Source of the DNA: Mizuhopecten yessoensis
Taxonomy: Eukaryota
NCBI RefSeq assembly: GCF_002113885.1
Contig: NW_018407747.1
Coordinates: 457,654-521,653 of the forward strand
Direction: 5' to 3'
Length of the DNA stretch: 64,000 nucleotides
Made by a program: the position numbers and the translations under genes. Within the stretch, counting starts at the first letter, position 1. Every line of letters starts with the position of its first letter. Shown in pieces: positions 5,401-62,182 of this stretch. The notes beneath the pieces were generated by a model. It had not been told where the DNA came from. It searched no databases and saw only the letters and a program-made list of their open reading frames with translations.

Positions 5401-8400
5401 ACGGTAACCCTGTCACCACCTCTGTGTTAATCTGACTTAATTTGAAACAATTTTAGGTTAAAATGTGGGCAGAAACACTAGCTCAATCTTTTAACCAACT
5501 TTATAAAAAGACTGAATAAGGGGAGGCAAATCCTGTACAGGATTGGAATATTTCATAGCTAGTCAAGGGGAAAAAAACTCCTGAATAACAGACAATGCAA
5601 CTAATTACAGAAATAGGGAGGTAACTTAAAAATGTATAAATATATATTAACTTATACAAATAGTAAAAAATCTGTAAAAAAAAATCCACTTTTATTTAAC
5701 CAGATATAAAATAAGCACTTTATTGACTGACCCATCAATTACTGAAACAAGGTTTGTATTTAGATACTTACCATTACAGTGACCTCAAGGTCACCCACAC
5801 CAGCCTCGCTGGTATCGATGGTGAAAGTGACTGGCTTGCTGGCGTGGATATTTGGTCCAACTCCTGATCCTGTGACGAGAACGCGGTTGGGGTCACAAGT
5901 CGGTAGCACTTGCATAGCAAATGGACTGTCGGGGGAAAAAAAATATTATTTCATTAGTAGTTGTACATCTGTCTCTAAAAACAAACTAGTGTTGACGGAA
6001 AGACAGTAATATTTTGATCTAATATAAGCACAAATGAACTTGAAATCAATTCGTGTTAATTGATTAAATGTTTCAAACATATAGACATCACTTAGCATTC
6101 ACTGAGTAAAGTGAAAGTAGAAGGAACAACAGTTTTACAAGATTAATTTGACAGGTGGGTATTTGATATCTTTAGGGTTCAGTGTGGGTATGTCTTTTTT
6201 TCTTTTCTTCAAGTTTCTTACCTGCCAGGAACCTGTTGGTCAGCGTACTTGACCTCGACCTTGCACTTGCCCTCTTCCTGGGGGAAGTAGGTAGCATTGA
6301 CCTTACCCTCACTGACAGGTTGCAGTTCTGCTGGACGTTTGTTTCCTGAAACCACAATAACTTGTTAAATACGATTTTTAAAAGAAATGTTTTGAACAAA
6401 ATTTCAAGTTCAAAATGTTTTTTATGTTAGAATTGGCAACTTTTCTATTGAACAAGTAATTGCTAGCGTAAAGAAGATATTTTTTTCGTGTAAACAACCT
6501 TATCAAATACAGCTTAAAACTTCTCTAATTATGAGTTTGTATTGACCGGTGGTCAATATTACCTTGGTTGTCAGTGTAAGTGACCTGCAGGGGAGCCTCT
6601 CCGGCCTCAGTTGTGTCCACGGTGAAGGTCGCTGGAGAGCCTTCGCGGACGCCCTTGCTGTCCAGTCCAGGGCCGTAGCACTGGACCTTGGCGGGGTTCA
6701 CTGGGTTCTTGATTCCAACATGGAACGGTGAGCCTGGAAAGGGATGCAGACAACTTATAGCTATATCATCTAAGGAGCAAACCATTTTATAGTTACTGTA
6801 TAAAAGGTAAAAAATAAACTTTACATGCATTAAGGGAAAACAGAAACCGAAGTAACACAATACTGCATTGTGTTCAACGTAGTGTAGGGGAGATAACTCC
6901 CACTTACCATTATCTAAATCAATATGAAAAATATACCCAGAAGAATTACATTGCCAACTATGAAACATTTATATAAATAGCTGTAATATTTTCCAAATGA
7001 AAAGTTCACTAACCAGGAATATTTTAAAGAGTCAAAAGCAAATATAAAGTTTTGATTCACATTTCCAAATTTTGGAAAAAAAACTAATTTCAGTATGTTC
7101 AACTGTAAGTTGGCTGGGTTGTCAGAATAGATTGTAAAGTTTCCATTTTCTATAGGATGGGAAGTCTGACATCAGAAAAATTGCACTCTACCTGGGATAG
7201 GTTGGTCAGCGAAGCTGATGTTCACATCATAGTCCCCGGGTTTTGTTGGGAGGTAGTCAACAGTGAGAGTGCCGTCGCGGTTGTCATTACAGTTTATCTG
7301 TGCCTCTACGGGTCCATTGATGGCAAGCCCAATGCCACCCTGTCCAGCGTTCTTGACGTCAACAGTGAACTGCTGGGTGTCGCATGACAAACCACCCTCA
7401 AGTCCAGGTCCGTAAGCCCTGACACGGCTAGCGTCGTTTCCAGGAACTGTGTTCACCTTGAAAGGACTCTTGGGGATCGGCATGTTGTCGTAAGTGACAT
7501 CGATGGTTGTTGGACCTGTCAATCAATCAAAGAATCAGGTTAATCACTCTGTAACACTAAAACTTTTTTCTACTCTTTTTTTTTTATTAAAATTTTAAAT
7601 GCAATATTTGGCAATTTTTTCACTTTGCATATTTGAATTTGATGACTTCAGTTTTTGTAAACATTTTCCTAGTGACTTTTCGTAGATTTGATCTCGCATT
7701 TTTTGGTAACAACTACAGGAACATTAGATGCGACCCACTGGTTCATATACAAGAACCAAACAATCACATCTTTTGTGTTCTTTATCACAGCTGAACTGAC
7801 CTTTCTATAAACAAGCCATTTGGATTAACATGTCTCGCCTATGCCCCGCTTTGACCATCAATGCACATATCAGAGAAACTAACTTAAACACAAAATCTTA
7901 ATGTTGATTGAGATGCTGACAAAGTCAATGGACCATGAAAGGTAGGCTGCATCCAGCATTTAATGCATGGAAATTTAATGCATTTGATGCCGGAAAATCA
8001 ACACTTAAGTCTCACTTCCACTTTGGGGCAGCGAGACAAAAACAAATCTCTATACAGTTACCCTTTTCTTAATAGATTTGATGAGAATAAAAATATCAGT
8101 ATGGAAGAAATCTGTCTTCTACAAATTTCCATTCCAAACAATAAGTGCACACACCTTGTTCCTCTGGGGTGTAGAGAACGTTGTAGGTACCGTCCTTTTT
8201 GTTGGTGACAATGCTGTCGTGCTTGGTTCCGCTTGGGCTTGTGACAATAGCACGGATGTTTCCCTCTCCAACAGGTGTGACGGACTTGGCATCAACGGTG
8301 AACTCGGAAAGAGATTCCAAAAATACACCTACAAAAAACATGCACAATTACATTTAAAAAGTTTGACACAAAAATCTGTAGTTTCAATATTTTTAATAAT

Positions 8401-11400
8401 GAAAGCAATGCATGATGAATAAATAAATTTAATCTATTAGTTTTCAAAATTAAGTTTTCCACTTATGAAGAATGCATCATCTACATTTCGTATAAAATAT
8501 TGTCATAATTGCAATTACTTTCCTTAGAAATTTTCATTTTTCATTTCAAGTTCCTATGTAAAACTTCTCTTATTTTCAATCACTATCAACGTTGAAAAGA
8601 AAAAAACACAGCAAGGGAGGTAACTGTATTTTGCAAGCAACATTTCAATTAATATCCATTATAGTTAATCCATTAATATTTTAATCCACATATGTTTACC
8701 ATTAATGCAGATTTATCACTAAAAGTCCATTGAAGATAAAACTCAAACTTATTAATATTCTTATCAAACATTAATGTACATGTATATTTATTTATTTTGT
8801 GCACTGTTATACAATATATATTTGTCCAAGCAGCAAATCCAGCTATTAAATGCAAGATAGCTTTCAATTTTAATTTGTAAATTTCAAATTTATGTATCAC
8901 CATGATCCAATCATCCAGTTTTCACAAATCAAACCAAAACTTAATCAAATTTTGTTGTGGTCATCCTAACAATTGGTCAAACTTGGTCAAATTCCATTAA
9001 GGCTTCGTGTGCAGGGTTAGTTAAAAATTTAGATAAAATGCATATTAGTCAATTTATTAATTATTTAAAACACATATAAGGACATTATTCGAAGTAAGTC
9101 TCAAATCAAATGCAAACTTCGAATTTTATTTTACCTGTATTCTGTATAAGCATTTATAATGCAATAATTTTTTATACAGTAGAATTATGAAGAATTGTGT
9201 ATATATATGGTGCATAAAATATACATATAAATTTGTCAAAGCAGCAAACAGCTATTGAATGGCAGATTTTCTTTCTTGTCTTTATCAGAAAATCATCCAT
9301 ATCTTTTTTCAAAAAATGTTTTTCACCAGAAGGATGCAAATAAGGTCTGTTAAAATAAGGCTTTATATATATTTTAATGATCATGTAAAAATTGGAATTT
9401 GCATAGAGGCAATTTACATGGAGACATATATTGCCCCGGCTTTTATGGTGAAGCTGTAAATAAATGCTAGAATACATTTAATTTTGTGTAATAGATGTAC
9501 CCATATTTAATTAAAATTTCTACTGGGGTTTTGCATTAATGGCCAACACAAATACACACACACTTAATTCATAGCATTGTTACTGAAGTTCATGTGTATA
9601 TATACAGCTTAACCTTGTCGGTCTGGACATTTTAACTTTCAGAAGAAAAAATTTATAANGGGGGGGGGAATCATATTATTTTTGAGTCCAGTCAAACAAG
9701 GTATTACTGCTGCATCAAGTTAAGGGCTAAATGTTTGTATTGAAACGACAAACAGTCACAGTTAAACACGAAATTAATGGTCAAATTGTCAACAGGCAAA
9801 TGCACACAGTTAGAGTGATAGGGGAGACTGTTGTTAGGGCTACAGACTTGTCTTTAGAGCTTTGGTCATACAATCCATAAATTGTTTCAAATGATAGACA
9901 GAAATAATAAAAGGAAATATCTGAAACTGGAGAGTTCAAGCATGCCTACATGTATACCGCAAACTTTTACTTGATAAAGAAAATTTGGCCGAATATGCTG
10001 CAAGCAATCATTTTTCTATTTAAAACTTATTTCTAGTTCTACAAATATGAATCATACACTCACTTTGTTACCAACTCCATTCAGCAAGAAATAATTTCGA
10101 TTTTTTAATTTTTTATATAGAAGTAGATAATTGTAACTAACAATTATTGATTTTTTTTTAAATGATGAAAGTACCAATAAATCAGTACAATAAAATCGTA
10201 TCTTGACAAGCCAGCCATGCAATCGGCTTAAGTATTCATTCCATTTACTCATTCCCCCATCTCCCATGCACTGCAAACTACCTGAAAGTCTAAATAGTAA
10301 GAAAAAAGAAGGAAAATGCAAACCAATCTACTATACTGAAAAGACAAGCTGAAAATATTAGATGAATTTCAAGCAAGCTACAGCATGTTTAGACCTTGCA
10401 CCCCTCCTGGTAGACCAGTCTATGATGCAGACCATACCATTTCACAATGAGGAGGGGTGTTGGCGGCCATGATATATGCTTGGCTTCGCTCGATTATTAT
10501 AACAGGCACGCAGGGAATATTAATGAGTAAAGGAAATTCATCCAAACAAATCCATGCGTAGCAATGCATTATGGGTAGGATGATTACCCTTGGGATTGAG
10601 ACCGGGTCCGTAAGCTGTCACTCCACTAAGATCCACCTTGGGTCCGGGCTCAATCTTGGCACGGAAGGGCGAGTTTTTGATTGGCTGTTCGGCATACGTG
10701 ATATTTACTTTGTATTCTCCCTCCTCGACGGGCATGTAGGTGAAGTTACATGTTCCATCGCCATTGTCAACGCAATCGATCTTAGCTTCCTTGGGTCCTT
10801 CCACAGTTACGCCGAGACCACCGGGAGTAGTTGCCTCCCTTGTATCCACAGTGAATGTGCAAGGCTGGTTGGATTTGCCTCCTTCCAAACCTGGACCATA
10901 TGCTTTGACCTTGTCTGAACCATCTGGCTGGACATCGACCGTGAATGGTGATTTAGGTACCTCCTTTCCGTTATAGGCAACATTGACCTTGTGCGGTCCG
11001 GGTTCCAACAAGGTGACTGATGCAGTGTATCCCTGGGGAGTTTCCTTTACTGGAATGTCCTTTTTGGTTCCGGATGGGGACACTACAAAAAGCCTGGCTG
11101 GAGTGTCAGACTTACCAGCTGCTGTGGTTACGATATCTACCTGCCTTGGTTCTTTGACCTTCATTGCTACAGCGTAAAGAAAATTTTAAATCATGAAAAT
11201 GTACATTGAACCCATCACAAAAACACATAAAACCTATACCTTTTTTATCCTCATACATTTCTTTCAAATTCAAAATATTTCTTTTTTTGGTTATTTTTTC
11301 ACAAAAATGAATAATTGGTAATTTCTTCTGTGACGGGTTGAACACTTACGTTTGTCCAGTCCAAGGACATTGACTTTAGCAACGTCAATCTTTGGTCCAG

Positions 11401-14400
11401 GAAGAACCTTGGCTTTGAACGGAGAGTTGGGGATTGGCTGTTCGGCATACGTGACATTAACATTGTATTCGCCTTCCGTCTCAGGGAAGTAAGTGAAGTT
11501 ACAGGTACCATCGCCATTGTCGACGCAGTCAATCTTAGCCTCTTTTGGTCCTTCCACAGTTACGCCGAGACCTCCGGGGGCAGTTGCCTCCCTCGTGTCT
11601 ACAGTGAATGTGCAAGGCTGGTGAGCCTTTCCTCCCTTGAGACCAGGTCCATAGGCCTTGACCTTGCTGGACAGATCTGGTACAGCGTTGACATTGAATG
11701 GGGACTTGGGGACCTCTTTGGAATCGTAGGTCACAGTGACCTTGTGTGGTCCAGGTTCTTGTACACTGAACTGACATGTGTATCCCTGGGGTGTTTCCTT
11801 AACAGGGACGTCCTTCTTCTTGCCAGATGGTGAGAGAACAGAGAGCTTGGCAGGCTGGTCTGATTTACCGGCAGAGGTTGTGATAATGTCGACAGGTCTA
11901 ACTTCACCGACTCTGATTGCTATGGAAACGAAACCAGACAGACATTCTTATTAAGTAATTAAACACAAATCTTCACAGAGAAAAAGGGAAAAGAAGAAAT
12001 AAATAGACAGAATTTGAGGAAAGATAAGATAAACAATATCCTTCCCATGCTTTTATTTTATTACAACACAGCACTCCACGCAAGACAAACTTACGTTTGT
12101 CCAAACCTACGACCTTGACCTTAGTGGCATCGACCTTGGGTCCAGGTAGGATTTTGGCCTTGAAAGGTGAATTTGGAATTGGCTGTTCAGCATATGTGAT
12201 GTTGACGCGATATTCTCCTTCAACCTCTGGCACGTAGGTGAAGTTACATGTGCCATCACCATTATCAACACAATCAATCTTCGCCTCTTTGGGCCCATCA
12301 ATTGTAACACCGAGACCTCCAGGGGCAGTTGCTTCCCTTGTGTCGACAGTGAATGTGCAAGGCTGGTGGGCCTTTCCACCCTTGAGACCAGGTCCATAGG
12401 CCTTGACCTTGGCAGCAACATCTGGGGTGACGGTGACTGAGAATGGAGATTTCGGGACTTCCTTGGCTGCGTATGTAACTGTGACCTTGTGAAGGCCAGG
12501 CTCCAACATTGTGAGATTGGCAGTATAACCCTGAGGGGTTTCCTTTACGGGGATATCTCGCTTCTTCTTGGTAGGGGAGAGAACTGTGATTGTAGCAGGT
12601 GTAGGAGATTTCCCACAATCCTTTGTAATGATATCAACCTGTCTTGGTTCATTGACCCTCATAGCTACAGTAAGAGAGAGTCAGGAGAATGAAGTAAAGA
12701 AAACAGGAAAAAAAGAGTAGGAAAAACAAAGTAAATCTAGTACATTTTATATGAAATTGTAAGTAAAACAAAATATAGCAATACAAAAATCGTAAGTAAA
12801 ATTCTTTCACCATTGTAATAAAAGGTGTGTATACTTTAAATACACTGTGAAAGCAGACAACAATTAGAAATGAAACCCCAACCATTGAAATATATAAGTA
12901 ACTTGCCCAATGTCCTTGTAAGTTAGTGCCGAACAAAACATAAAAATTCCAATAAACCACCCACAGTTATTTGTTATGTGCAATTATCAAAATCTTCTGA
13001 TTTTGGACTTAAATACAAATTCACCTCCCATCTCCGTGTGTAAAATGTGCAAGTGTCGTAACCTTGACCAAGAAGCTTGATTTTTAAACAGAAACACTTA
13101 CGTGTATCTAATCCTACGACCTTGACCTTGCTGAGGTCAATACTGGACTCGACGGTGACCTTAATGGGACTTTTCGGGATCTCACTGTTAGCGAAGTAAA
13201 CCTGTACAACGTAGGTTCCGGGCGTCTTTGGTTCGTACTCGATTCTGAAAGTGCCATCTTTGTTGTCAACGGTTTTGACGGGAACATCTTTTCCTCGTTC
13301 ATCAGTCAATGCAATGCTGATATCGCCTGAAAATAAACATTTTTAACTTGAATTTTCACCGCTGTTTCTGACGGTTATCAACCAGACTAACATCTGCTGT
13401 AAAACTTTTCATTGATTTGCGTAACATATTTTCAGCTATACAGAAAATTTCAAATCTGTTAAAAGACAATACACATTCATATCGTCTAAAGCAGTAAGAT
13501 ATTTTCCTCACCTGGACCAGCAGTCTTACAGTCCACAACGAAATAGGTCTTGACTCCGGTCTTCACTCCCTTCTCGACTCCAGGACCATACACCTTGACA
13601 TTTCCTGGCTTGGATGGTTCTCCGACCAACACCTGTAGACAAATCACATGCCACAATGAATCTTACATCACACCTCTTTGTCACAATACCAGATTTTATT
13701 CAATTTGTGGGTTGAAAATTGTGGGTTGAAAATGTTGTGATTTTTGCAAAAATATTTGGTGCAAGCCAAATAGTGAGAAAAAAAAAATCATTAATTTGTG
13801 ATCAATCCATGTTATATGTACAGATCAGGTTGCATGTGATGGTGCTTTTGATGGTGTGTGGTGTTGTATTTACTAGTGACCTGTACTCACCCTGAATGGA
13901 CTGTTGGGGATCTGTACTCCTCCAGAGGAGATGGTGCGTTTGACGGTGTGTGGTGTTGTATTTACTTGTGACCTGTACTTACCCTGAATGGACTGTTGGG
14001 GATCTGTACTCCTCCAGAGGAGATGGTGCGTTTGATGGTGTGTGTGGTGTTGTATTTACTAGTGACCTCTACTCACCCTGAAAGGACTGTTGGGGATCTG
14101 TACTCCTCCCCAGGTGATGGTGATGGTGTGTTTGACGGCACGCTTGGTCATGTATTTACAAGAGTAAGTTCCGTCCCTGTTGTCCTTAATCTGGACCTCG
14201 ACAGGTTTGAGGTCGACGTCCAGACAGGAGATCTTCAGGCTAGCCTTGCCTGCCTTCTTTGCATCGACAGTAAACTCGGCCCAGGTACTAACCTTGACTC
14301 CAGTCTTCTCCAGACCAGGACCCTTGGCAATGACCTAAACATGACAAACATCAATACATACTTATCATCTTTTCATTGACAGGAGGAAATATTGGATGTA

Positions 14401-29400: not shown

Positions 29401-32400
29401 TGTTAGATTATCTCCTGAAGATCGGGAGATATCTATTTTACAGACGACAGACACGCATGTAACACTATCCAGCATTTGCCGACGTTGGCCACTGATTAGA
29501 AATAATATCGTAACTTTGGTAATGCGACTGTAGACCAACAACTACAAGTGACGCGTGACATACATATCTCAGTGAGGGTTGGGAAGGTAGGACTGAGGAC
29601 TGACGACTACATGGTACATTGTCATTAATAATTTATATAAGCAGCCTTTACCCAACAAGGCCTAGGTAAGAGTTCTTCGAGTTCTGCTTGGCAAGAATTT
29701 GGATCAAACTCCATATTTGTTGTTCATGAAGATTTGATAAATCTATCTTGAGATTATTTCTCCATAAACTTTCAATAATTCAAAAGCCAGGTTTTAATTA
29801 ACAGATATCTTAATCATTATGACTATATTACATTTCCTCCTTTTAACTGCAAGTACTCCTACAGATGGATTGTAACAGAGTGGACAGATAAACAAACTTG
29901 TAATGAAATCATGTGACCATTAGACTATCTCTCCACTGTTACCTACACAACCGTTATCACTACACTTAATGGTACCCACCTGTGGTACTCCCAACCATTT
30001 GTCGGCAGCATCCATGGCTTCCTTGGCGTTCTCCTTCTTCTTCTTGGGATCCCAGTTGTCCCAGTCAGGGCACAGACCTATCAACACAAACCGTTTTTGT
30101 TACACCTAGATGGTCACACAAGCTCAGCATTATAGCAATAGACTTTCCTCTACCTTGAAACTTTAACATTGAAATTATGTCACATATTTTTTATTCAAGT
30201 ATTGATTTTGTGGAAGTATTTCACTAAGAAATGTGCATACTAGCAAACTTTCCCTATTTTGACAGGAGGCTCCCGATTTTGGACCCAAAAATTGAACATT
30301 TTCAGCCAGTAAACTTGCTAAAATAATTCCTAAGATCTAATGATTTCAATTAAAAGAACAACTTTTTATTATTATTATTGTTTTGAGCATGTTGAATCTC
30401 CCCAATGGAAATTTCACAAAAAAAAATGGCAAGTCTTGACTCTCTGAGGAGGCAAATTCATAATCCAGGGGAGATAACACTGACAGGCTCTATTTTTGGA
30501 TTTTTTGTCTGGCAGAAGGGAAATAACTCTGCCTGATTTATCTTATCTTTAACTACAAGGGTATAAAACAGTATCTCCTGCAATATCACATTTGTTAAAC
30601 AACTTACATTTTATTTTACGATATTGTTTTTCTATTTTTAAGTGTTTCCTTTCTGTAGCCATCCAGCTTATCAACCAATAAAATGGTGCACATTGTAAAT
30701 TTCTCATAAACCAGAATTTATGCACAAAAAAGAAACAACCAAAATGGCCTCAAGTCAAATTGATTGATAGACTCAAGTTTTGTGGCGTGTTACAAGTTAA
30801 AAGCTGCACTGTTACGTATGACTGTTTCTACTCAGGTGAAGTAATGGCTGGATCCTGCTGGTATGAAATAACAATTAACAGAGCTCGGAGCTCGGGGCTC
30901 GGGGCTCTCACCAAAAAGATGGAAGAGATAGACCACCAGCAGATGGCTTTGGGTTATACATGTACCGTTATAAATTCTTTCCCTGTACAGTTTAGTACTG
31001 TATGTTATCTACCTACTTCCTCATCCTCAGAAAAACATGTTTCCATCCTAGCTTAAAAGGTTTCTTCAAACTTTTTCAATGAGGAAACAACCCTTTTTCC
31101 GAAGTGGGAGACTTAACTTGGTATTGTATTTCCCTTATACATTTCTGGAATATCAACAATCTACGATAACATCCTTTTGTTTAATGTTGTCATTAAAAAT
31201 AGAACCAGGACAGAGTTTGGAGTTTTTCTAGTTAAGCCCATCCTCTTAAAATCATGCTGGCATCTACAATTTTACAGCTGGGTAGACTGGGCCTAGAATT
31301 TCTTATTTTGATGCTTGATACAACAAACAAGTTTAAACATCCAAGATTTCATTCAATTGCATATTTTTACCAAAATCATGATACACCAAATTTCGACAAA
31401 ACATTTATGCTACGCACCGGGTCCAACAGCATCAACCAAAGCTCCAATGGCCTTTCCATCATTCCAGTCGGTGGTGAAGTTACGAATCGGCAGGTCAGGT
31501 ACCTTGCCCTGTACCCAGTTGAGGAGCCTCTGTTTGGGTGTGGGTCCGCCCTCTGATGGTCCTGGCTCTTCGCCCTCCCACATGGGCATAGAAATGGAGT
31601 AGTGGAGAATGAGGGTCCATATTAAACCCAGGATCAACTTCAGCTTACTGTCCACAATGTCCGTACTGTCTGCAAAATACAAACAAACAAAACTGTCAGA
31701 ATACGAAATCTGAAAATCACACTTATTTTTAATAATAATGGTTGGCTACATAAACTGATTTTAATGAAACATTACCATTATTGGATACTGATGTTAAATA
31801 AGGTTCCTCCATCTTTACATTGTTTAATTAGGATCAGAGGTATCATGCGCAGGTATTTAATAAATCATTACTGTATACCGAGAAATTTCTGCCACAGTTT
31901 TACTTTCCCCTTTTCTCCCTTCATAATGAAGGTGAATTTATATTTAGAGCGTTTATTAGAAAACAACCAGTACATGGTAATCAAATGTAAAGGGCAAAAT
32001 GAACACTGTGCAAATATGGATTTTACAAGAAAGTTAGACCTGGCAAACAGTTCTCAGGATTCATTTTATTTGAATGATATTTAATATAGTGTATCGGGGA
32101 CAGGTTCTGAATACAGAATGATCCGAAGTGAAAACTTTCATTCAAAACTACATACATCCAAGATTACAGGAGTCGGTGAATGTGAAAGGTATTGCATGGG
32201 AAAGACATATATATATATGAATATTTTGGAAATGAATTTGATGTTTAAATGAATATTCAGTGAAAATCCATACAAATGTATCGATGGTATATATACGATC
32301 AATGATTCAACAGTTTTATCAGGCAAATCTAACTGGCACTCATAACAGCAACTCTTTCCATATATGGACATGAACAGATAACTCAGCCCCACCCACTTAA

Positions 32401-59400: not shown

Positions 59401-62182
59401 GTGTCCACTGTTATGATCAAATGTGAATTTGAGACTTCGATGTAAGAAAACACTGATCTTTCAGATTAAGAAAGAAAACAGCACAGCAAACTCAGTTGTT
59501 TAAATATCAACACAAACCCATAACCAATTAATTCACTTTTATGAACAAATGTAATCATTTGAGTTTCTAAAGAAATGTCTGTGTTTTGAATGACAGCAAA
59601 ACTACTTAAACTTACATATGGCCCATATGTGCACGTCATGAAAAACATAACTGCTGACATTCCGGTAAATCTCGTTAATCACCTGTATGAACGTTGACAA
59701 GCATGATATATGTCTAAGTTTTCATACAGGTAACAAATCATCCTTTACAAGTTCTTCACTTGTGATGTGTCATCTTATACATTTAATTACAATTTCGATA
59801 TTGGTTTAACTGTCCCTTAAGTTGAAGCATAAACAAAGCATGAAATAAGCCAAGTAGGTCATCCCATATTCTCCGACTCAAAGAGGCGGGGAGAGATTTT
59901 GAACATGTACATCCCCTATAAATTTTGACATTCTGCCTATATAGAATTGAACAACTATTTTGCCCACCCCCTCCCACACAATTCTCAATAAAACACTACA
60001 TTACAATTTGTAAGCATTGTCTATGAACTGCAATAGACAATAGCGGGCTTATTACCAGGCATGGGCTTATTTCTGGATAAGTACAGGGTACATAAACTTG
60101 ATTGCAGTGTAAAAGATAACCGATCATACATTATCCAATTTTATTAGGAAAATATGGGAATTTTGCTTCGTTATCTTAACATTACTGAAGATTAATATCG
60201 CTGAATTCTAACAATGTTCTTTCGGTAAGTGAACTGTTATACATGTAGGTAAGGTAGCCTTACAAGAATCATGGTAAAACTTTTGAAAATCTCATGAAAA
60301 CATGCATCAGTTGAAAGGTGCATTATACACATTTCTATTCCCCCAGACATAGTCATTGATGTCAATGTGTACACCACAGTCATACAAATTTTATCTCCCT
60401 AAAGGTCACAGATTCAGCAATTTGTTGTTTCATTTTCAACTTTGACATTTCATTTGTGCAAAATGAAATATACATGAGCATAAGGGGTTTTTACATATAT
60501 ATAAATATACAAATAAAAACTAGAGTTTTGTTTATAGCCAGACTTGAAACTCTGCCAAAAATTAAACGACAAACTCGAACAATACATAACTTGCTGGTAC
60601 ATAACACATTTGTGTTTTATAAAAATTTCTTGTGTCGACTAAAGTATTGTAGTACTTAACAAACATGTTACCAATTTATCACAAATCAGGGTTGACAGAC
60701 TTAAATACAAATTCTGTTATAACCTAGCAACTTTATGCAACTTTCAATTGGTTTAAACAATTTTGTGTGGATAGTAATGTCAGTATATTCACGACCCACC
60801 CCCTCACTTCACCAACTTTGAGATAAAATTTAACCCTGCAATTTGGGGGACACACCCATTTCAAATCTGACCTCAATATCATTCGCAGTGATAAGGTTTC
60901 TTGCAAGGTTGTAGGGAAAAAAAGACATTAACAAAAAAATATAATTAGGATTGTTTTGTTGAAGAGTTTTCATTAATTTAACAAAAAATCTTTGTATATA
61001 TTGTAATGAATTCATCAAAATTAACAAAAGCTATTATTAATGCAACTTATATAAACTGCTTAAAAAACAACTACACAATGATGGGGCAAAAAATGACTCT
61101 TTAAATGACAATTTTAATTTAGACACCTTTTGGAAGTTGAAGATAGTTTGAGCGGGATCTAACTGACATTAGTCTGGTGCAGAGGAACAAGGCCTTGTAC
61201 CAGAAACAAATTGCTAAATTAATTTACTGTTCATCATTAGAAGAACTGTCCCTCTCCCACAATTTCTGCTAATGTGATAACTGCTTCCATATGATGGGTC
61301 CAATACACATGTGTATTCAGGTATTACCCTACTAGTAGTCTGATGGCCAGTGGCTAAAACGGGTCAGTAATGTGGGTTGCAGAAATCTCGGACCGAATCT
61401 TATCCGAAATTATTTTAATGTTTTTCATTTCAGCAAGAAAAAACAATTGGAGTTTAGAATGTCAATAATGTGCAAATTGGGAGGCGATCGATGATTTTAC
61501 ACTGTTACAATACACAATCGACGGAAGCCATGTTTGTTTATATATTTCGCCACACGTGTGTACTGCAACAGGTAAACTATGAACGGTTCCATTACTGTCA
61601 CTATGAATAGACACACATTAAAAACGGGGTTTTTCTAGAGAAATTAAATCGAACTTATGACAGGAGATCTCTGCTGGACCGGAATAGGCGTTCTCACCTG
61701 AAGCAGGTAAAATATGCTAAGGTATTTCACTCAACCATCGTGACCTCTTCAGTCGGTCACGCCCGAATTCCGACGTGTGTGCATGTGAATACAACTGATT
61801 GTATCTGTCATAAATAATATAAAATAAAATTAAGACACTTACCGATGTTGACGATCCTGATCCCCTCATCCTTCTCCAGGAACTCCAAAACCATGGTAAC
61901 ATTTTCAAGTTTCTGTGTTCTGAAGTTGGGCCTCTTGTTGATTTTTTTAAATTGCTTGCCGGAAAGCACTTCAATTAGCGATATTAAACGTAATCCATCG
62001 CTAAGATCGGCTTCTAGGTCGTTTAAAACCTTATTTACCGTTTTCAGGTGTTCATTAGCCCACCTGGAGAAGGTGTTTTTCTGGATAAGCTTCCATTGAG
62101 CGTCGTCCGCTAAATCTCTCTCTGTTGCCGGCATCTCCTCTTCCTCGTCCTCGTCATAAAACTGTGCCTCGCTTTCATCCAT
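2188..62182 (-). CDS. FLNA: Filamin (FLNA/cheerio family), multi-exon gene, 3'-incomplete in window; span of resolved coding exons
   Basis: 23 GT-AG exons join in frame (5709 nt). N-terminal CH domains ([47 protein letters not shown]) are followed by 17 Ig repeats with YGPGL...SPF motifs. Confidence 0.97.
2499..2690. mobile_element. Degenerate MITE-like remnant
   Basis: TACAGTCAAA-type terminus with internal inverted GAGACCATT/AATGGTCTC. Confidence 0.3.
2857..3046 (-). CDS. FLNA: Filamin exon 22 (Ig14-like)
   Basis: [21 protein letters not shown]...[21 protein letters not shown]; 190 nt. Confidence 0.94.
4380..5322. repeat. 41-bp minisatellite, 23 copies, intronic
   Basis: Unit GAATTAACCCCTTTCCCTGGCAGAAAGATGGACCAGTGATA repeated head to tail with few substitutions. 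Confidence 0.97.
5772..5925 (-). CDS. FLNA: Filamin exon 21 (Ig14-like)
   Basis: [52 protein letters not shown]; 154 nt, phase 2-0. Confidence 0.93.
6222..6345 (-). CDS. FLNA: Filamin exon 20 (Ig13-like)
   Basis: [41 protein letters not shown]; 124 nt, phase 1-2. Confidence 0.92.
6563..6733 (-). CDS. FLNA: Filamin exon 19 (Ig13-like)
   Basis: [24 protein letters not shown]...TYTDNQ; 171 nt. Confidence 0.93.
7192..7515 (-). CDS. FLNA: Filamin exon 18 (Ig11/Ig12-like)
   Basis: [19 protein letters not shown]...FADQPIP; 324 nt. Confidence 0.94.
8155..8328 (-). CDS. FLNA: Filamin exon 17 (Ig11-like)
   Basis: [15 protein letters not shown]...YTPEEQ; 174 nt. Confidence 0.93.
10249..10281 (-). 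CDS. Candidate 33-nt cassette microexon in the Ig11-like repeat ([11 protein letters not shown])
   Basis: Long pyrimidine tract TTTTCCTTCTTTTTTCTTACTATTTAGACTTTCAG; donor A|GTAAAT; phase 1-1; TGCATG about 30 nt downstream. Confidence 0.45.
   Translation of the reverse strand, partial: VVCSAWEMGE
10588..11166 (-). CDS. FLNA: Filamin exon 16 (Ig8+Ig9-like pair, copy 3, running into the Ig11-like repeat)
   Basis: [11 protein letters not shown]...[15 protein letters not shown]; 579 nt, phase 1-1. Confidence 0.94.
11350..11919 (-). CDS. FLNA: Filamin exon 15 (Ig8+Ig9-like pair, copy 2)
   Basis: [11 protein letters not shown]...KVNVLGLDK; 570 nt, phase 1-1. Confidence 0.94.
12095..12664 (-). CDS. 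FLNA: Filamin exon 14 (Ig8+Ig9-like pair, copy 1)
   Basis: [11 protein letters not shown]...KVKVVGLDK; 570 nt, phase 1-1. Confidence 0.94.
13102..13326 (-). CDS. FLNA: Filamin exon 13 (Ig6)
   Basis: [12 protein letters not shown]...[26 protein letters not shown]; donor C|GTAAGT; 225 nt. Confidence 0.94.
13512..13632 (-). CDS. FLNA: Filamin exon 12 (Ig6)
   Basis: [40 protein letters not shown]; donor GTGAGG; 121 nt. Confidence 0.93.
13845..14160. repeat. About 92-94 bp tandem repeat derived from the 3' end and donor of exon 11
   Basis: Unit GGTGTTGTATTTACT(A/T)GTGACC..ACT(C/T)ACCCTGAA.GGACTGTTGGGGATCTGTACTCCTCC occurs three times; donor-like sites at 14077, 13983 and 13891. Confidence 0.9.
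14077..14334 (-). CDS. FLNA: Filamin exon 11 (Ig5)
   Basis: [12 protein letters not shown]...[12 protein letters not shown]; donor AGG|GTGAGT; 258 nt. Confidence 0.92.
14849..15042 (-). CDS. FLNA: Filamin exon 10 (Ig4)
   Basis: [28 protein letters not shown]...PQSPF...DSSK; 194 nt. Confidence 0.93.
15361..15624 (-). CDS. FLNA: Filamin exon 9 (Ig3/Ig4)
   Basis: GGKELKC...[10 protein letters not shown]...[30 protein letters not shown]; donor GTAAGA; 264 nt. Confidence 0.93.
16145..16282 (-). CDS. FLNA: Filamin exon 8 (Ig3)
   Basis: [46 protein letters not shown]; 138 nt, phase 1-1. Confidence 0.93.
16596..16669. promoter_or_regulatory. Paired RFX X-box-like motifs
   Basis: GTTGCCATAGCAAC (16656-16669) and ATTTCCATGGCAAC (16596-16609). 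Confidence 0.5.
18354..18404 (-). CDS. 51-nt microexon, Ig2-Ig3 linker ([17 protein letters not shown])
   Basis: GTTGATTTCACAG|CTGGAAAAGGG...GCTCCTG|GTAACT; phase 1-1; two internal in-frame GTAAAC donors. Confidence 0.8.
19319..19684 (+). mobile_element. Degenerate non-autonomous element resembling bivalve Helentron-associated (HINE/pearl-type) repeats
   Basis: AACTAGA start, TGACCTT motifs, GACAGG-like micro-repeat, terminal C-run/G-run palindrome followed by an A-run. Confidence 0.4.
19989..20000 (-). CDS. 12-nt microexon, Ig2-Ig3 linker (AKAP)
   Basis: ATTGATTCACAG|CCAAAGCACCTG|GTAAATATAAG; flanks resemble those of the neighbouring microexons. Confidence 0.72.
20374..20409 (-). CDS. 36-nt microexon, Ig2-Ig3 linker ([12 protein letters not shown])
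   Basis: GATCCACAG|CTGGCACC...CCACCTG|GTAAATATGAG; GC-rich island in an AT-rich intron; phase 1-1. Confidence 0.8.
21354..21560 (-). CDS. FLNA: Filamin exon 7 (Ig2)
   Basis: [13 protein letters not shown]...[12 protein letters not shown]; donor G|GTACGA; 207 nt, phase 1-1. Confidence 0.94.
23223..23236. promoter_or_regulatory. RFX X-box motif
   Basis: GTTACCATGGAAAC matches the GTNNCCATRGNAAC X-box consensus. Confidence 0.45.
24098..24127 (-). CDS. Candidate 30-nt cassette microexon in Ig2 ([10 protein letters not shown])
   Basis: TTTTAATAAACAG|ATGCAGGGGGCTCCAAATTGGTAGGAAAGG|GTAAGT; phase 1-1, no stop. Confidence 0.6.
25782..25944 (-). CDS. FLNA: Filamin exon 6 (Ig1/Ig2)
   Basis: [15 protein letters not shown]...[16 protein letters not shown]...EVFTK; donor A|GTAAGT; 163 nt. 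Confidence 0.94.
26972..27046 (+). mobile_element. tRNA-derived SINE-like head or degenerate tRNA pseudogene
   Basis: Pol III A box TAGCTCAGTCGG and B box GGTTCAAATCC at tRNA spacing; acceptor and anticodon stems do not pair. Confidence 0.6.
27269..27346 (-). CDS. FLNA: Filamin exon 5 (Ig1)
   Basis: [26 protein letters not shown]; AG...GTAAGT; 78 nt. Confidence 0.92.
27604..27870 (-). CDS. FLNA: Filamin exon 4 (end of CH2, start of Ig1)
   Basis: [25 protein letters not shown]...[13 protein letters not shown]...KEP; donor GTAAGT; 267 nt. Confidence 0.95.
29980..30077 (-). CDS. FLNA: Filamin exon 3 (CH2)
   Basis: [33 protein letters not shown]; donor CAG|GTGGGT; 98 nt; absent from the ORF track. 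Confidence 0.93.
31418..31669 (-). CDS. FLNA: Filamin exon 2 (end of CH1, start of CH2)
   Basis: TTTTGCAG|AC...; [24 protein letters not shown]...ALVDAVGP; donor G|GTGCGT; 252 nt, phase 1-1. Confidence 0.95.
50934..50997. repeat. Short tandem repeat of CTCTATTATCTGACT(CGG), about 4 copies
   Basis: Directly visible in the sequence. Confidence 0.85.
53392..53449. repeat. 28-bp tandem duplication
   Basis: CACCCCTACCTTTTCTCTTTAGGCTTGA occurs twice. Confidence 0.85.
57380..57610. mobile_element. Degenerate MITE-like remnant with internal sub-repeats
   Basis: Repeated GTC(C/T)(A/G)G(A/T)TTATACAGGGTT and AGAAATG(T/C)ACAGTGGGA motifs. Confidence 0.3.
61843..62182 (-). CDS. FLNA: Filamin coding exon 1 (acidic N-terminus, CH1)
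   Basis: Kozak CCAACCATGG; [12 protein letters not shown]...GIRIVNI; donor G|GTAAGT; 340 nt, ends phase 1. Confidence 0.96.

Follow-up and report, generated by a model that had tools for sequence, protein, structure and literature searches.

The subject of this analysis is a 64,000-nucleotide (nt) stretch of the genome of the scallop Mizuhopecten yessoensis (contig NW_018407747.1, positions 457,654 to 521,653; hereinafter the window, with coordinates counted from its first letter), which contains the beginning of a filamin gene. The gene lies on the minus strand: it starts with calponin-homology (CH) exons near 62182 and extends beyond the low end of the window, with filamin-repeat matches continuing for about 50 kb downstream. 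The CH exons at 61844-62182 and 31416-31670 mark it as the filamin gene proper, the Mizuhopecten yessoensis filamin models match the exons of the window at 100%, and the gene is collinear with oyster and fish filamins. Within it we find three adjacent paralogous exons, A, B and C, each coding for two immunoglobulin (Ig) repeats of the filamin rod. The reading that we favor, with a probability of roughly four in five, is that they represent an old triplication of a two-repeat exon in the scallop lineage, the copies of which are used as optional cassettes to yield several rod lengths. All three exons are already included in RefSeq models; hence, what is gained is an interpretation and not a new gene.

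The two-repeat exon array and its position in rod 1

The array is bounded on its upstream side by a constitutive exon, termed 'pre' (13102..13326, minus strand, with AG and GT sites), which encodes the second half of Ig6 and the first strand (10 residues) of the next repeat. It is followed on the same strand by exon A (12095-12664, 570 nt), exon B (11350-11919, 570 nt) and exon C (10588-11166, 579 nt), all of phase 1-1, and then by a downstream constitutive exon, 'post' (8153..8328, minus strand), which encodes the body of the next repeat and aligns with vertebrate Ig11. The introns around the array measure 437, 175, 183 and 2259 nt. The two internal ones, also read from the minus strand, lie between A and B (11920..12094, with an RNA joint 11919>12095) and between B and C (11167..11349, joint 11166>11350), and neither resembles the other introns: no significant similarity was found among the four array introns, which are alike only over 9 nt at their donor sites. 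Exons A, B and C have AG acceptors and GT donors, their lengths are divisible by three, and the RNA joints fall exactly at their borders. They thus show the features of a tandem exon duplication: adjacency, equal phase, near-equal length and significant mutual similarity. Repeat borders and exon borders differ, with each exon ending in the first strand of the following repeat. Exon A, an alternative cassette as described below, comprises a repeat at the Ig8 position, then an Ig9-like one, and ends with the first strand of the repeat that follows; B and C are the second and third copies of this two-repeat unit, and the 13-residue tail of C supplies the following repeat with a first strand of the ordinary kind, like that seen in molluscs with a single unit.

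The initial annotation, made from the letters of the window, had described three adjacent paralogous phase 1-1 exons of these lengths, separated by short and unrelated introns, that lengthen rod 1 of filamin. Splice sites, reading frame and RNA joints agree with this description. So does the arrangement of the protein: RefSeq isoform X1 (XP_021363267.1, 2876 amino acids (aa)) contains the translations of A, B and C exactly, starting at residues 913, 1103 and 1293. A repeat scan of X1 recovers 26 repeats, among which the three exons supply repeats 7-12, and a hinge-like gap of 67 residues after repeat 17 delimits a rod 1 of 17 repeats, with the units lying ahead of it.

Each exon translates into 189-192 aa, in which two Pfam Filamin repeats are recognised (E 4e-40 to 8e-38), PF00630 being matched in two stretches per exon with scores of 129.7-137.1 bits against a cut-off of 26.9. 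Matches to structures in the PDB reach down to E 7e-47. An AlphaFold2 model of exon B (mean predicted local distance difference test score 88.9) consists of two Ig beta sandwiches, the second of which fits Ig17 (2bp3) and Ig21 (9lwx, 2brq) of human FLNA with a root-mean-square deviation of 0.9-1.6 Å and target-normalised TM-scores of 0.91-0.95.

The two repeats of the unit, here termed d1 and d2 in their order, differ in how specifically they can be tied to vertebrate repeats. In comparisons with all 24 repeats of gecko FLNA and killifish FLNC, d2 is closest to Ig9 (59-65% identity, 100-118 bits), with Ig17 and Ig12 (82-90 bits), and also Ig19 and Ig4, as runners-up; its top single-domain match in the PDB is the ninth domain of human filamin B (2di9). 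In the same comparisons d1 displays no specific likeness to Ig8: its matches are weak (35-47 bits) and scattered over Ig2, 3, 7, 11, 15 and 20. The whole unit is collinear with residues 982-1174 (Ig8-9) of FLNC, and only such long alignments reach back into Ig8. Of the initial proposal that each unit is Ig8+Ig9-like, the Ig9 part therefore stands, whereas d1, as far as sequence comparison goes, is to be regarded as Ig8-like by position only. We also considered whether the units correspond to the conserved domain pairs of rod 2, in light of the top two-domain PDB matches (Ig20-21, Ig16-17 and Ig18-19), and rejected this on account of the position in the gene, the collinearity and the Ig9 match; an Ig8-9 pair is missing from the PDB, and this biases two-domain matches toward rod 2.

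The C-D strand region is the peptide-binding face in vertebrate Ig9-type repeats, with beta-strand peptides bound in the groove between C and D. In the scallop unit, this region (residues 114-138) hardly varies, either from copy to copy or among molluscs, and the near-identical stretch spans strands C (117-122) and D (129-133) of the model. By its alignment and collinear position d2 qualifies as the orthologue of vertebrate Ig9, a repeat of the peptide-binding class (repeats 4, 9, 12, 17, 19, 21 and 23), and by the conservation of this face it is a predicted peptide binder. In this context, it may be noted that filamin domains 4, 9 and 12 bind the same peptides as domains of rod 2 (PMC4170960).

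Optional use of the exons in transcripts

RNA was mapped to positions 8000-13700 of the window, as raw reads for three runs and as contigs for a fourth. All joints of the full array (pre>A, A>B, B>C and C>post) are seen, with canonical ends: A>B and B>C in runs X21 and X24, C>post in X21, X24 and X10, and the inclusion joint pre>A in 3 reads of X21 and 10 reads of X24. Alongside these, the donor of 'pre' is joined not only to A (12664>13102) but also to B (11919>13102) and directly to 'post' (8328>13102). The joint that skips A is represented in X24 by 7 reads from 4 different starts, compared to the 10 for pre>A, and in X10 the same pre-B junction can be read from loose ends at 11919 and 13102. 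A joint from B to 'post' (8328>11350), which skips C, has 3 reads in X21, and the joint skipping A, B and C together has 3 reads from 3 starts in the same run. Skipping of B alone was not seen in the mapped runs.

Read depth and joint counts fit each other. In X24 the depth of A is about half that of B and C, in X10 it is 461 as compared to 3736 for B/C, and in X21 both 'pre' and 'post' are covered about twice as deeply as A, B and C. Public models point in the same direction: in this region exactly exon A is missing from both OWF45693.1 of M. yessoensis and isoform X9 of Argopecten. Elsewhere, the former is shorter by three small segments of 10, 33 and 19 aa, and the latter has a 5-aa insertion. 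The site of the array also accounts for length differences of 680, 679, 380 and 285 residues between annotated isoforms of single genes in oysters and mussels.

The frame is kept at all these junctions, with the junction codon specifying Pro before a unit and Gly or Arg before 'post'. With inclusion and exclusion joints, canonical intron ends, a preserved frame and models both with and without it, exon A is a regulated cassette that is included at roughly 10-60% depending on the sample. Its skipping in a substantial share of transcripts is solidly documented by two RNA data sets and two public models. Transcripts without C, and without A, B and C together, also occur, at 3 reads each in one run. 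Thus, the exons are not always included. The suggestion of the initial annotation that the two 570-nt copies could be skipped cleanly holds in part: A is skipped in frame, as are A, B and C together, whereas B was not seen to be skipped alone and the 579-nt exon C proves equally skippable. An arrangement of mutually exclusive exons was considered and discarded in view of the abundant A>B and B>C joints and of RefSeq models that contain all three exons.

The same RNA data reveal sequence variation within the array. At position 10636 the RNA has T in 6/6 and 52/52 reads and in one contig, from three runs, where the assembly has C, which turns Val177 of exon C into Met. Met is also the residue of Argopecten at this position, and the reference letter is therefore a rare allele or an error. 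Further exonic sites (10724, 11149, 11423, 11768, 11876, 12240 and 12576) are polymorphic in RNA, with 30-80% alternative letters varying by run; these look like ordinary alleles rather than products of editing.

Lineage distribution and competing explanations

Orthologues of all three exons are found in two other scallop genera. Isoform X2 of Argopecten irradians has units that match A, B and C of Mizuhopecten with identities of 98%, 90% and 88%, and those of Ylistrum balloti do so at 95%, 94% and 92%, whereas paralogue pairs of scallop units are only 68-79% identical. Exon A is the most conserved copy between Mizuhopecten and Argopecten; strong conservation is common for regulated alternative exons.

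Molluscan filamins beyond the scallops show other arrangements at this site. We classified 25 molluscan models by what they contain between the orthologues of 'pre' and 'post'. Nothing intervenes in Ostrea X18 and C. virginica X13, and in such oyster isoforms without an array the orthologue of 'pre' joins straight to that of 'post'. A single d1-d2 unit is present in Aplysia, in Lymnaea, in one Bradybaena gene and in the shortest Mytilus isoforms. Arrays with one d1 followed by multiple d2 occur in the long isoforms of oysters (d2 x6), in Sinanodonta (x5) and in Nucella, Pomacea, Babylonia, Littorina and Bradybaena (x2, x3, x4, x9 and x15, respectively). The converse pattern, multiple d1 followed by one d2, is seen in Mytilus isoforms (d1 x3-7) and in Dreissena (d1 x16). 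Among these models, only the scallops have three complete d1-d2 units. The interval between 'pre' and 'post' (8329-13101 in the window) is a hot spot in molluscan filamins, with copies clustering by lineage in trees. A 547-aa metagenome fragment from ENA, in which the end of one d1 is followed by six tandem Ig9-like repeats that are 63-79% identical to scallop d2, represents another d2-only expansion.

In maximum-likelihood trees computed separately for each repeat, the scallop d1 and d2 copies form clades of their own, with Shimodaira-Hasegawa-like approximate likelihood ratio (SH-aLRT) values of 96 and 95, respectively, and with the orthologue pairs nested inside them. Oyster, unionid and gastropod copies fall each into their own clades. 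As judged from these trees and from the arrangements in relatives, the triplication is to be placed in the scallop lineage, after its split from oysters and mussels and before the divergence of the three genera. Accordingly arranged copies being confined to scallops, the initial annotation's view of a lineage-specific exon multiplication is borne out both by the per-domain trees and by copy numbers in relatives: three units in Argopecten and Ylistrum, and one unit or other arrays in the remaining molluscs, so that the triplication is not universal across bilaterians.

Two explanations that would remove this dating have to be weighed. It is highly improbable that the three units go back to an ancient set common to bilaterians, corresponding for instance to conserved domain pairs of vertebrates: the units lie in rod 1 (repeats 7-12 of 26), are collinear with Ig8-9 and have their d2 closest to Ig9, a single unit is present in gastropods and in the shortest mussel isoform and none in some oyster isoforms, and the scallop copies form exclusive clades. 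The observations favoring this explanation are the top two-domain PDB matches, all to rod 2 pairs, which are subject to the bias in the PDB described above, and the saturation of synonymous divergence (dS) between the copies. Even less credence can be given to an assembly artefact in which alleles, collapsed or expanded, were placed side by side. Tandem repeats are sometimes mis-assembled, and nothing beyond this generality speaks for it; the copies are only about 70% identical, the A>B and B>C joints link them in order in RNA, no read fitted two places, and the same three units are present in the independent assemblies of Argopecten and Ylistrum. A further alternative concerns the use of the exons and not their age, namely that the skipping joints are splicing noise or unproductive, functionless by-products and that the protein always carries all three units. 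The low counts of the joints skipping C and the entire array (3 reads each, in one run) would fit this, as would the RefSeq isoforms X1-X11 of M. yessoensis, which span 2843-2876 aa, differ in length by 5-33 residues and appear to keep all units (the three that were checked hold A, B and C). We nevertheless consider it unlikely: exon A is skipped frequently (7 against 10 reads in X24) and has about one-eighth the depth of B/C in X10, 'pre' and 'post' have about twice the depth of the array in X21, models without A exist in two species, A is the best conserved copy (98%), and series of annotated isoforms with varying copy number at this site are known from other bivalves.

The similarity among the copies calls for a separate consideration, since the initial annotation had proposed that they might be homogenised by gene conversion. 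Its observation that the second half is nearly identical in protein and shares long DNA matches is accurate: protein identity between copies is 72-76% overall and 60-67% in d1, rising to 86-93% over residues 83-140, with the quoted motif present. At the DNA level, pairwise identity is 68-71% overall, 82-93% in the middle and up to 93% in 60-nt windows of the second half, and the longest exact matches are 33 (A-B), 26 and 22 nt. This local near-identity, including the 33-nt A-B match, is what maintenance of the second half by gene conversion (concerted evolution) would produce, and it goes together with a proportion of synonymous differences (pS) of 0.49-0.68 in the d2 core, below the 0.75-0.82 of d1, and with identical codons that are commoner in the core for A-B and B-C. 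Yet in d1, core and tail alike, orthologues of Mizuhopecten and Argopecten are closer to each other than is any pair of paralogues, and a permutation test on the longest run among 82 codons at which A, B and C agree in the residue but show silent differences was not significant for A-B (P = 0.09), A-C (P = 0.99) or B-C (P = 0.22). The stretch in question moreover hardly varies across molluscs and shares 59-65% identity with vertebrate Ig9, and protein constraint on the C-D region suffices to account for the long DNA matches. Silent divergence between the copies is itself saturated (dS from 1.7 to above 3; 0.8-1.8 in the d2 core), indicating that they are old. Conversion as the cause of the near-identity hence appears quite improbable; recent conversion among A, B and C is not supported, none being detectable in these comparisons, and an ancient, partial exchange between copies may have occurred but is required by nothing. 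The copies are under purifying selection, which is most pronounced in the C-D strand region of d2.

To return to the reading of an old scallop-lineage triplication used as optional cassettes, the following points weigh against it or against parts of it. The joints that skip C and that skip the whole array stem from a single run, X21, the runs carry no tissue labels, and a further run of raw reads, X23, yielded only 4 mapped reads, with the gene being hardly expressed. Identical codons are mildly, though not significantly, raised in the core (A-B 0.65 and B-C 0.62, as compared to about 0.46 elsewhere), and conversion was tested on proteins between species and on silent sites within one genome. 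Finally, the mode of origin by unequal crossing-over presented below is a reconstruction from sequence, and the proposed effects on rod length and ligand valency are carried over by analogy from vertebrate filamin.

Probable origin, proposed mechanical consequences and relation to other filamins

A possible course of events can be sketched from the ends of the exons. The tails of 'pre', A and B end in K-V-x-V-x-G-L-D and show 71-73% identity across 49 nt that take in the donor site, whereas exon C ends in G-V-T-A-Y-G-P-G-L, as do the units of single-unit molluscs. In the stem lineage of scallops, a single exon with the Ig8-position repeat and the Ig9-like repeat would have been copied twice in tandem, and the likeliest mechanism would be unequal crossing-over between the paralogous first-strand tails of 'pre' and of the unit exon. 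Such a crossover would leave A and B with the 'VVGLD' tail and the donor of 'pre', and C with the original 'AYGPGL' tail. Since then, A, B and C have persisted as distinct exons, each with its own orthologues, in at least three genera of scallops.

All exon boundaries are in phase 1 and directly follow the first strand of a repeat; hence, any subset of the exons can be removed while leaving whole Ig repeats. Depending on the exons included, rod 1 would comprise 17, 15 or 11 repeats and perhaps also 13, and between 0 and 3 peptide-binding repeats of the Ig9 type would be present in the array. In vertebrate FLNA each repeat adds roughly 4 nm; at this value, the arm length of the actin cross-link would change by up to about 20 nm. 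Rod length and peptide-binding repeats determine the cross-linking of actin networks and the tethering of receptors by filamin.

Comparison with known systems brings out both parallels and distinctive features. In vertebrate FLNA, FLNB and FLNC the Ig8-Ig9 pair occupies the collinear position in the rod, with Ig9 being the closest relative of scallop d2 and 2di9 its best single-domain match. The scallop gene differs in having three copies, at least one of which is optional, and a d1 without a specific match to Ig8. To our knowledge, vertebrates have a single and constitutive Ig8-Ig9 copy, and we know of no vertebrate filamin that departs from the fixed count of 24 repeats. Known splice variants of vertebrate filamins concern the hinge 1 exon and a 41-residue deletion in Ig19-20. 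They resemble the scallop case in being frame-preserving options that alter mechanics or ligand binding; however, they remove the hinge or part of a repeat, whereas the scallop exons add or remove whole Ig pairs in rod 1.

Growth of filamin rods by tandem duplication is itself not new. Tandem duplication of two domains is the accepted model for how the rod grew and is proposed as its ancestral mode (PMC4170960), and PMC8275333, drawing on Light et al. (2012), names lineage-specific expansions, by single- and multi-domain duplication, in Hirudo medicinalis and Trichoplax adhaerens. These share with the scallop array the tandem growth of repeats in single lineages. In contrast, the scallop element is one exon of exactly two repeats, conserved in the family and used as a splicing cassette, and the same molluscan site has also expanded independently as d1-only or d2-only arrays. 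Another parallel is offered by Ig arrays of the titin/connectin type, for which differential splicing is mentioned in scallop muscle (PMC5963113). There, too, Ig-fold exons of equal phase stand in tandem, and a mechanical protein becomes longer or shorter with the number of them that enter the mRNA; however, they belong to a different family and fold subtype, and the scallop filamin array, with three units, is far smaller. In the literature we found no description of two-repeat cassette splicing in rod 1 of filamin, of a triplication in scallop filamin, or of recurrent independent expansions of filamin at this one site across molluscs.

The array presents a clean case of exon duplication followed by use as cassettes: one scallop gene gives rise to filamins with 0, 2 or 3 extra Ig8-9 units, an arrangement kept at least since the divergence of the three scallop genera compared. 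It thereby offers natural variants in length and valency for probing the roles of rod 1 length and of Ig9-type sites in cross-linking. In related molluscs the same problem has been solved by multiplication of just one repeat of the pair. For scallop muscle, discordant protein and mRNA levels of filamin between striated and catch muscle have been reported, with post-transcriptional regulation being suspected (PMC5963113); isoform choice at the array is worth considering in this connection. More broadly, we put forward tentatively, as a proposal that we hold with less than even confidence, that molluscan filamins carry an evolvable, alternatively spliced exon array at the Ig8-9 position, which has expanded independently many times: as (d1-d2) x3 in scallops, d1 + d2 x6 in oysters, d1 x1-7 + d2 in mussels, d1 x16 in Dreissena, d2 x9 in Littorina and d2 x15 in Bradybaena. 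By means of such an array, cells may set the length of the cross-link and the number of Ig9-type sites, possibly tissue by tissue. If this is true, the array could tune filamin differently in, for example, fast striated as opposed to catch muscle.

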